Below are positions 10,019 through 12,119 of a stretch of 32,000 nt of DNA, in pieces. Within the stretch, counting starts at the first letter, position 1; each line of letters opens with the position of its first letter. The translations under genes were made by a program, and so were the position numbers. The notes beneath the pieces are model-generated. The model saw only the letters and a program-made list of their open reading frames with translations. It did no database searches and was not told where the DNA came from. Source of the stretch: Zygophlyctis sp. KS116 (Eukaryota; Fungi; Chytridiomycota); the NCBI GenBank assembly GCA_054661495.1, contig BAAFSQ010000066.1:1-32000 (forward strand), read 5' to 3'.

Positions 10019-12119
10019 ATGACAAACTGGGATAATAGTTCTTATGGAGGCAATGGATATGGGGGATCTTCTTATGGAGGAGGCTCCTATGGTCAATCAT
10101 CTTATGGCAAATCATCTGGCAATGGATATGGTCAATCTTCTAATGGAAGAGGAGGATCTGGATCTTATGGAGGAGGCTCCGGTTCATATGGAGGCAACTC
10201 TTATGGAGGGGGATCCTATGGAGGAGGCTCTTATGGAGGTAATGACAGAATGGGAGGTCTCGGTGACAATTTGGAACAAATCAATTGGGATCAGGAACTA
10301 GAAAAATTACCAAAGTTTGAAAAGAATTTTTATATTGAACATCCAAAAGTCAAGGAAATGAATTCATCTCAAGTTGATGCATTAAGAAAAGAAATGGATT
10401 TGCAGGTATATATCATTCTTTTTTACTATAAACCCGGTTTAGGTCATTGTTTCAGAACAAGATCTAAACTTTTTTTCTTTTTTTACTAAACTATAGGTAT
10501 TTGGGCATGCTGTTCCTAATCCAGTATCTACTTTTGAAGAGGCTGGATTTCCTGGTTATGTTATAAAGGAAGTTTTAACTGCAGGATTTGAAAAACCTAC
10601 TTCAATTCAGAGTCAGGGATGGCCAATGGCTTTAAGTGGTAGGGATATGGTAGGAGTAGCATCAACAGGATCTGGAAAAACACTTTCTTTTGTTCTTCCG
10701 GCTATTGTTCACATCAATGCTCAACCTCTACTCTCACCAGGTGATGGTCCTATTGTTTTAGTTCTTGCTCCTACTAGAGAATTAGCTATTCAAATTCAAG
10801 TAGAAGCAAACAAGTTTGGATCTTCTTCAAAGATTAAGAATACTTGCATTTATGGAGGTGCTCCAAAGGGTCCTCAGATTAGGGATTTGTCAAGAGGAGT
10901 AGAAATAGTTATTGCAACTCCTGGAAGACTTATTGATATGATTGAATCTGGTAAAACAAATTTAAGAAGAGTTACTTATTTGGTCTTGGATGAAGCAGAT
11001 CGTATGTTGGATATGGGTTTTGGACCTCAATTACGTAAAATTGTGGATCAAATTCGTCCAGATCGTCAAACTCTGATGTGGTCTGCAACATGGCCCAAAG
11101 AAGTTCAATCTTTAGCAAAAGACTACTTGAAAGATTTTATTCAAGTTAATGTTGGTTCTATGGAACTTTCTGCTTCTCACAACATTACTCAAAACATTGA
11201 AATTTGCAACGAATTTGATAAGCGTGAAAAACTCATTGGGCATTTAAGAAGAATCATGGATGAAAAATTAAACAAAACAATCATATTTACAGGTAAAAAA
11301 AGAACAGCGGATGAGATTACTCGAGAACTTCGGCAGTCTGGATTCCCTGCTCTTTCGATCCATGGTGATAAGAAACAGCAAGAAAGAGACTGGGTAATGT
11401 CTGAATTCAAACGTGGAAAATCTCCAATTCTCATTGCTACTGATGTAGCAGCTCGTGGATTAGGTAAGTTTTTGAAAGATTTAGATTCGCACCAATCGAG
11501 TTTTTTCCAGCTATATCAAAGATATACGACGATCATTTTTATTCAGCCCTGGGTATTTTGTATGTGGATCTGGCTAACCACTTACAAAATCAATTAAAAG
11601 TCGATTAATTTCGAGAATTTTTTGGGTTGAATTAAGAATGTTGGAAAAAAAGGTGTGGATCGATTATTTTATGATTACTAACGATATAGATGTTAAGGAT
11701 ATTAAGGTATGCAAAAATTATAGGTAGGAATAACACAATAGTATGTCATCAACTTTGATTTCCCAAACAATGTGGAAGATTATGTTCACCGAATTGGCCG
11801 TACTGGAAGAGCTGGGTAATTTAAAACATTGTAAAATTATAGTGCTAAAGGAACTGCATACACCTTTTTCACAACTGAAAATGCAAAACAAGCTCGACAA
11901 TTATTAAAAATTCTTGAAGAAGCCAAACAAGAAGTTGATCCTCAACTTCGTGACATGGCAGGTTACGGCGGTAATTTACAATTACATAATTTTGTAGGAG
12001 GATTCGGTGGAAATGGACGTGGAGGACGTGGTGGACGTGGTGGTAACAGAGGAGGTTACCGCGGGGGCAATAACCGAGGATTCTCTGGTAGCCGTTACGA
12101 CCCTTATAACAGACGTTAA
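10019..12119 (+). CDS. DBP2: DEAD-box RNA helicase Dbp2 (p68/DDX5 ortholog)
   Basis: Gly-rich N-terminus, [36 protein letters not shown] and RGG tail. Introns at 10406-10496, 11464-11689, 11707-11741, 11816-11842 and 11971-11997. Confidence 0.96.
10034..10220 (+). repeat. Coding low-complexity repeat (GGSYG units) in the Dbp2 N-terminus
   Basis: Repeated TCTTATGGAGG/TCCTATGGAGG units. Confidence 0.8.
10406..10496 (+). other. DBP2 intron 1 (91 nt) with an internal hairpin
   Basis: GTATAT...CTATAG. GTTTAGGTC (10437-10445) pairs with GATCTAAAC (10461-10469), with an inner TTGTT/AACAA stem. Confidence 0.85.
11464..11689 (+). other. DBP2 intron 2 (226 nt), highly structured
   Basis: GTAAGT donor, TACTAAC branch point (11676-11682) and TAG acceptor. 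Several nested complementary stems. Confidence 0.9.

Follow-up and report, generated by a model that had tools for sequence, protein, structure and literature searches.

A compact, structured and retention-prone intron at the conserved long-intron site of the DBP2/DDX5-type helicase gene of the chytrid Zygophlyctis sp. KS116

Why does a gene with introns as short as 27 nucleotides (nt) keep one of 226 nt, and does the extensive secondary structure predicted for that intron serve a purpose? The question is raised by a DBP2/DDX5-type DEAD-box helicase gene of Zygophlyctis sp. KS116 (Fungi; Chytridiomycota), found in a 32,000-nt stretch of DNA (GenBank assembly GCA_054661495.1, contig BAAFSQ010000066.1, positions 1 to 32,000 of the forward strand), hereafter called the window. 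The five introns of this gene measure 91, 226, 35, 27 and 27 nt, which makes intron 2 about eight times as long as the 27-nt introns. An earlier note, made from the letters of the window alone, had proposed that intron 2 folds into a large multi-stem RNA through which the helicase controls its own expression. We conclude, with a probability of roughly 0.6, that intron 2 is the chytrid version of the DBP2/DDX5 regulatory intron, in which a rod-like fold would both aid splicing and sense the helicase, giving negative feedback. The gene and the parts of intron 2 are as follows.

10019-12119, plus strand: DBP2/DDX5-type DEAD-box helicase gene, six exons, 564 amino acids, with a Gly/Tyr-rich N-terminus and an RGG-rich C-terminus
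10019-10405, 10497-11463, 11690-11706, 11742-11815, 11843-11970 and 11998-12119, plus strand: DBP2 exons 1-6
11464-11689, plus strand: intron 2 (226 nt), in phase 1 within the Asp codon that follows ARGL; structured and retention-prone
11676-11682, plus strand: branch-point consensus TACTAAC; 8 nt separate the branch A from the acceptor
11482-11493, plus strand: P1, 5′ strand; helix 1 has 13 pairs, with 96% of cells paired; spans 11484-11493 in the minimum free energy (MFE) structure
11652-11663, plus strand: P1, 3′ strand; spans 11652-11661 in the MFE structure
11501-11511, plus strand: P2, 5′ strand, in both the MFE and the consensus fold
11640-11650, plus strand: P2, 3′ strand, in both the MFE and the consensus fold
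11512-11526, plus strand: P2a side hairpin, 6 base pairs (bp) and a 3-nt loop, with 100% of cells paired
11535-11549, plus strand: P3, 5′ strand, which holds the two clearest compensatory changes
11624-11639, plus strand: P3, 3′ strand, in both the MFE and the consensus fold
11555-11590, plus strand: distal hairpin (variable domain), MFE strands 11555-11567/11578-11590
11595-11597, plus strand: first in-frame stop upon retention of intron 2, from a reading-frame check

Intron 2 runs from a GTAAGT donor at 11464 to an acceptor AG at 11688-11689, and the gene model together with these signals and the branch-point consensus bore out the earlier note in taking it for a genuine intron. Its MFE was -58.0 kcal/mol, compared with -40.6 ± 4.0 for 200 dinucleotide shuffles (z = -4.32), and none of the 200 shuffles reached so low a value. 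The MFE structure holds 71 pairs, eight of them G-U, and contains every stem that the note had drawn, at the same coordinates. The antisense strand folded far worse than the sense strand, both in the window (-37.4 versus -58.0) and in the relative L013 (-34.8 versus -57.9). This asymmetry fits a structure formed by the RNA of the pre-mRNA strand, as the note had argued, and not a DNA palindrome. With P1 closed, 182-194 nt are looped out in the window and its relatives, and the single strand left, 18-20 nt next to the donor and 24-27 nt next to the acceptor, comes to 44-47 nt, in agreement with the effective intron of about 50 nt in the earlier note; these lengths are conserved. The end-to-end duplex of the intron was significant (z = -3.2, p = 0.007). 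The shortest path from the 5′ splice site to the branch point in the MFE structure was not discriminating, with 21% of the shuffles equally good.

In the MFE structure of the window, the donor hexamer (11464-11469) also pairs with the branch-point heptamer (11677-11682) over 5 bp, with an adjoining 8 bp. A similar pairing was present in the folds of the relatives L012 and L014 and absent from that of L013, and it may reflect no more than the partial complementarity that the two consensus signals have in general.

Close relatives of the window species were found by scanning metagenomes with the final 122 residues encoded by exon 2, which gave seven contigs at 91-96% protein identity. Six of the seven carry an intron of 232-241 nt at the site of intron 2, and these introns represent about three further lineages (L012; L013, L015, L016 and L017; L014). 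The introns of three relatives each folded independently into the arrangement P1-P2-P2a-P3 (z = -6.0, -3.5 and -2.15), and RNAalifold recovered the helices P1-P3 from the alignment of the clade. Standard pairs filled 94.6% of the pair cells, versus 30-49% when the partners were shifted by 1-3 columns. Two-sided changes occur in four pairs, as many as in 3 of 500 shuffles, and many further stem pairs change on one side through G-U. The clearest compensatory changes both lie in P3, at pairs 83/185 (GC<->UA) and 89/179 (UA<->CG). In P2a all six stem pairs are invariant; in one relative the loop differs at one position, and another has lost 4 nt at the 3′ end. When the window was compared with the relatives, the stem columns (P1, P2, P2a and P3) were 80-86% identical, versus 50-52% for the four-fold degenerate sites of exon 2 and 39-47% for the remaining columns of the intron (Fisher p from 5e-6 to 6e-13).

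The same contigs revealed how the intron behaves in natural RNA. L011 and L012, which came from different samples, match at 100% across 701 nt of exon 2 and have opposite intron content; since their exons are identical and their introns differ, both must be transcripts. In L011, intron 2 has been removed exactly at the predicted junction and introns 3 and 5 are kept. In L012, L013, L014 and L017, intron 2 is kept and introns 3 and 5 have been removed, and L016 keeps introns 2 and 3. The remaining contig, L015, is 4.4 kb long, extends into both neighbouring regions and has introns 2, 3 and 5, and was taken as the genomic reference for its lineage; L013 and L017 are near-identical to it, yet keep only intron 2. 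Among the six RNA-derived contigs of relatives, five retain intron 2, and in four of these the tiny introns had already gone. Each RNA-like contig begins shortly after the start codon and terminates no more than about 60 nt from the stop codon. As the L011 and L012 forms come from one organism, both splicing orders occur around the 17-nt micro-exon (exon 3) that separates introns 2 and 3. That the L011 form keeps two tiny introns was unexpected. Retention of intron 2 brings a premature stop before helicase motif VI, within five codons in the L013 group, and in the window the in-frame stop stands where the earlier note had placed it.

The corresponding gene was compared in seven other chytrid genomes. 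All seven have an intron at the same Asp codon and in the same phase, right after ARGL, with lengths of 471-1221 nt:

Gaertneriomyces: 721-nt orthologous intron
Polychytrium: 1208-nt orthologous intron
Spizellomyces: 475-nt orthologous intron
Batrachochytrium: 1221-nt orthologous intron
Borealophlyctis: 471-nt orthologous intron
Rhizoclosmatium: 682-nt orthologous intron
Entophlyctis: orthologous intron of about 1010 nt

In these chytrids the orthologous intron is far longer than the remaining gaps between the exon pieces of the gene (roughly 45-220 nt). In Aspergillus clavatus, an intron of 495 nt interrupts the same codon in the same phase, and L003, a relative at 75% nucleotide identity, has at least 270 nt of intron at the site, its contig ending within the intron. 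Helicase motifs V and VI flank the site. Since a long intron stands at the identical codon and phase in seven chytrids and Aspergillus, we conclude that intron 2 is the conserved DBP2 intron, and the late position that the earlier note had assigned to it was correct. The DBP2 intron of Saccharomyces cerevisiae presumably interrupts the same codon, a placement taken from the literature. The long intron also affected annotation: in Gaertneriomyces and Rhizoclosmatium, gene callers split the DBP2 gene in two at this point.

The fold has a much narrower distribution than the site. All-against-all blastn of the chytrid introns gave one block of 34 nt, shared by Gaertneriomyces and Spizellomyces, and the whole-intron MFE was mixed in the four other chytrids concerned (z = -5.0 in Gaertneriomyces, -2.6 in Polychytrium, -2.3 in Batrachochytrium and -1.5 in Spizellomyces). 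As most of the other chytrids have no significant stem and their introns have no sequence in common with intron 2, the rod cannot be called an ancient shared element. Judged from these comparisons, only the site and the length of the intron are ancient, and the end-to-end stem is specific to the clade of the window. The 34-nt block is near the 5′ end of the Gaertneriomyces intron. That intron (721 nt, L004 3954-4674) is itself strongly structured, with an MFE of -242 and z = -5.0, and has no sequence relation to the fold in the window.

Several points weigh against the reading of intron 2 as a regulatory intron that acts through its fold. An nhmmer profile of the clade introns found nothing meaningful in the seven chytrid introns and the partial L003 intron, the covariance model of the clade gave only noise against the other chytrid introns (E >= 0.35), and a significant end-to-end stem is lacking in most of their long introns, with a weak one in Borealophlyctis (p = 0.03). 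Covariation is thin even within the clade, where there are about four independent lineages and most stem pairs never vary; such invariant pairs are neutral on the question of pairing, and a sequence-specific protein site may fit them equally well. Retention was seen in relatives at 85-90% exon identity to the window species, and RNA contigs of the window species itself (four runs, Logan contigs) hold exon pieces only, none over 11439-11762. Assembled contigs give no retention rates, and the retained forms could be overrepresented through nuclear pre-mRNA present in total-RNA libraries.

These points limit how far two of the checks suggested in the earlier note can be carried. Comparison of structure and covariation among orthologues upheld the fold in the close relatives, with the four two-sided pair changes, and produced no match to it in the other chytrids. 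Because most stem pairs are invariant across about four lineages, there is no deep covariation proof; what the alignment shows is selection on the stem segments and compatibility with pairing. Retention, likewise, was found in five of the six RNA contigs of relatives, and for the window species the RNA contigs reach exon sequence only.

Considering these data, we propose the following for intron 2 as a regulatory intron. In this clade of ultra-short introns, the conserved long DBP2 intron would have shrunk to 226-241 nt, about 80% of which would be a selectively maintained RNA rod, made up of P1, P2 with P2a, and P3, with a variable tip. The looping out of 182-194 nt by P1 would leave the donor and the branch point and acceptor joined by only about 45 single-stranded nt, and the rod would thereby act as a zipper that lets a spliceosome tuned to about 27 nt use an over-long intron. 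Intron 2 would be removed more slowly than the neighbouring introns of 26-35 nt, and for that reason transcripts retaining intron 2 only would accumulate. With an early stop before motif VI, such transcripts would be unable to encode an active helicase. When Dbp2 activity is high, the stems would be opened or bound, productive splicing would fall and retained transcripts would rise, closing a negative feedback. On the part played by Dbp2, on a need for the fold in splicing and on what becomes of the retained transcripts, we argue by analogy from work in yeast and plants. Negative feedback appears the most likely function, since the same intron self-regulates in yeast and the hairpin in the gene of the plant DDX5-like helicase DRH1 is opened by DRH1.

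A more specific form of this proposal is possible, and we put it forward only tentatively: the rod may be an independently evolved sensor of helicase activity, built like the DEAD switch of plants. P1 would then hide a decoy acceptor (TAG, 11482-84) and the distal hairpin a donor-like GTATGT (11560-65), and opening of the stems by Dbp2 would divert the pre-mRNA to non-coding forms, through the decoy sites or through loss of the zipper. The TAG that opens P1, whose AG at 11483-84 the earlier note had singled out as a cryptic acceptor at the stem's base, is invariant and paired across the aligned introns. It would close a mini-intron of 21-23 nt and is possibly a decoy 3′ splice site masked by P1; its use was not seen, all intron-2-containing RNA contigs keeping the first 21-23 nt of the intron. 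The GTATGT at 11560-65 is paired inside the distal hairpin in the window, and a GTA[A/T]GT is found in the variable distal domain of six of the seven aligned introns (alignment columns about 116-127), with GTAGAT in L012. If the sensor proposal holds, DDX5-family helicases of fungi, plants and animals would all gauge their own unwinding on a duplex in their own long intron, and the 226-nt element would be the smallest natural example for dissecting such sensing.

The main alternative, to which we give a distinctly smaller chance, is that the rod is only a structural aid to splicing, that is, a zipper stem with no Dbp2 feedback, and that retention reflects slow constitutive splicing beside the 17-nt micro-exon. 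The closing off of 182-194 nt by P1 between flanks of conserved length (18-20 and 24-27 nt) is what such an aid would produce, and so is an end-to-end duplex that is significant only in the tiny-intron clade (p = 0.007) and weakly so in Borealophlyctis (p = 0.03). A central hairpin (z = -2.6) is present in the 91-nt intron 1 as well, the contigs include both orders of splicing around the micro-exon, and zipper stems are common in yeast (PMC12311795). However, a splicing aid alone leaves unexplained why the long intron has persisted from chytrids to Ascomycota when its neighbours were lost or shrunk, and why the sequence of the stems is conserved beyond pairing; moreover, the yeast and plant relatives do use the long intron of this gene for feedback.

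We regard it as unlikely that the rod is a binding platform for a decay or retention factor, comparable to Mmi1 of Schizosaccharomyces pombe, or a precursor of Dicer-type small RNAs, with its structure incidental to splicing. The nearly invariant stem sequences and P2a stem, which exceed the needs of pairing, would agree with a platform, and the orthologous intron of S. pombe does use protein-binding motifs (PMC4695336). On the other hand, a search of Rfam 15 at E <= 10, a check that the earlier note had suggested, gave no match inside 11464-11689, no boxes of a small nucleolar RNA (snoRNA) are visible in the intron, and a search of the genome with the covariance model gave no second copy. Since loops and G-U pairs interrupt the rod, it is not a clean Dicer substrate. 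A known snoRNA or microRNA hosted by the intron was rejected on the same Rfam result, which still allows a new small RNA.

That the fold is a product of chance or a functionless remnant of an inverted-repeat transposon is highly improbable: the AT-rich sequence and the nested inverted repeat at the DNA level would fit such an origin, but intron 2 is single-copy in the 12.7-Mb genome, with only the self-match found by BLAST and by the covariance model from the clade alignment, its stems exceed neutral sites by far in conservation across four lineages, compensatory and G-U-compatible changes occur in them, and folding shows a strong strand asymmetry. A miniature inverted-repeat transposable element in the intron was ruled out by the single copy and by sense folding far above antisense.

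The gene itself starts with the codon at 10019 and ends with the stop codon at 12117-12119. Both the DEAD and the Helicase_C Pfam domains lie within exon 2 (10497-11463), the protein of which shares 78-80% identity with those that are called dbp2, p68 or DDX5 in Gaertneriomyces, Polychytrium, Batrachochytrium and Spizellomyces. Database searches were made with single exons, and the joined protein was translated only for the frame check. The nearest paralog in the 12.7-Mb genome is only 43% identical to the gene product; we therefore take the gene to be the single DBP2/DDX5 ortholog. The G + C content of the window is 34%. On the minus strand lies a 6-phosphogluconate-dehydrogenase-like gene (9767-10019 region; Pfam NAD_binding_2, E = 1.5e-14), whose start is some 35 nt away from the start codon of DBP2, and the divergent promoter and 5′ untranslated region between the two genes is extremely short. 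The features flanking exon 2 and intron 2 are:

10406-10496, plus strand: intron 1 (91 nt); its central hairpin has MFE -13.9, z = -2.64
11690-11706, plus strand: micro-exon, 17 nt, coding for DVKDIK; both junctions present in the RNA contigs of relatives
11707-11741, plus strand: intron 3, 35 nt, directly 3′ of the micro-exon
L004 4675-4691, L005 5210-5226, L006 4560-4576, L007 5059-5075, L008 4449-4465 and L009 2955-2971: micro-exon equivalents

The central hairpin of intron 1 covers an internal TTTAG/GT. This intron is missing from all contigs of the relatives, the genomic contig L015 included, and is thus either a lineage-specific gain or was lost in the others. The 17-nt micro-exon is also found in six of the seven other chytrids, between the long intron and the second intron, with the peptide DVKDVK in Batrachochytrium and DVKDIR in Rhizoclosmatium; the second intron, which follows the micro-exon, has been lost in Entophlyctis and Aspergillus. 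As only 17 nt separate the acceptor of intron 2 from the next donor, introns 2 and 3 probably cannot be engaged simultaneously. Intron 3 (34-35 nt) of the window, L015, L016 and L011 has an internal TAG/GT(A/G)(G/A)G, and could be taken for two adjoining halves, each of 16-18 nt. A screen of the window for further long introns yielded putative candidates only.

Three known systems bear comparison with intron 2. The first is the DBP2/DDX5 autoregulatory intron. In S. cerevisiae DBP2, in intron 2 of S. pombe dbp2 and in human DDX5, introns of conserved position and length are described as poorly spliced and as negative regulators (Kilchert 2015, PMC4695336, citing Barta & Iggo 1995; PMC12311795; PMC1920232). 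Intron 2 is like them in belonging to the same gene family, in its site between motifs V and VI, in being far longer than the other introns, in its poor splicing or retention and in giving a retained transcript that is non-coding. The match in position to S. cerevisiae, S. pombe and human was taken from papers (PMC4695336), whereas the chytrids and Aspergillus were compared by sequence. It differs in its length, 226-241 nt versus about 0.5-1.2 kb, and in the dominance of one conserved rod-like fold. In S. pombe, Mmi1 acts on unspliced dbp2 intron 2 RNA (PMC4695336), and the mechanism relies on Mmi1 sequence motifs. The literature that we found defines no conserved structure for the yeast DBP2 intron, and leaves undefined what the helicase recognises in the 0.5-1.2-kb introns of yeast and human. 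In the chytrid intron, the remaining conserved fold (about 36 bp and a branch hairpin) marks a candidate functional core, in a short RNA suited to chemical probing, to unwinding assays with recombinant Dbp2 and to reporter mutagenesis.

The second system is that of the yeast zipper stems, which are splicing enhancers in RPS17B and RPL7B, the enhancer structure of RPL7B being inhibited by the gene's own protein (PMC12311795). Here too a long-range helix is predicted to join the donor-proximal and branch-point-proximal regions, and would shorten the distance between them to 44-47 nt. In contrast to the yeast cases, the chytrid intron stands out far more from the normal introns of its host, and its stems are conserved in sequence as well as in pairing; a role in its splicing is a prediction from the yeast examples. 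The intron offers, in addition, a natural experiment on how a spliceosome geared to tiny introns copes with a long one.

The third is the DEAD motif of plants, in which a hairpin in a long intron of the DDX5-like gene DRH1 senses DRH1 helicase activity (bioRxiv 10.64898/2026.01.23.701338). The stem (DRH1/RH46) is described there as hiding an alternative 3′ splice site at its base, its opening by the helicase leading to non-coding isoforms, and the motif as a single hairpin of 19-20 bp with a loop of 3-5 nt, reported only from land plants (bioRxiv 10.64898/2026.01.23.701338). Common to the two is a structured RNA in a long intron of a gene for a DDX5-like helicase that ends in an RGG tail, and the chytrid intron has, where P1 begins, an invariant TAG that follows the donor by 21-23 nt, with a donor-like GTA[A/T]GT further in. 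The chytrid element differs in being a branched, multi-helix rod that encloses about 190 nt, with no sequence relation to the plant motif, and the contigs of the chytrid relatives show retention of the whole intron and no splicing at these internal sites. Conservation and self-regulation of the DBP2/DDX5 intron were already known from the 1990s on, and intron 2 is not a new kind of system; what is new is its compact structured form, which offers a fungal counterpart to the recently described helicase-sensing hairpin of plants.

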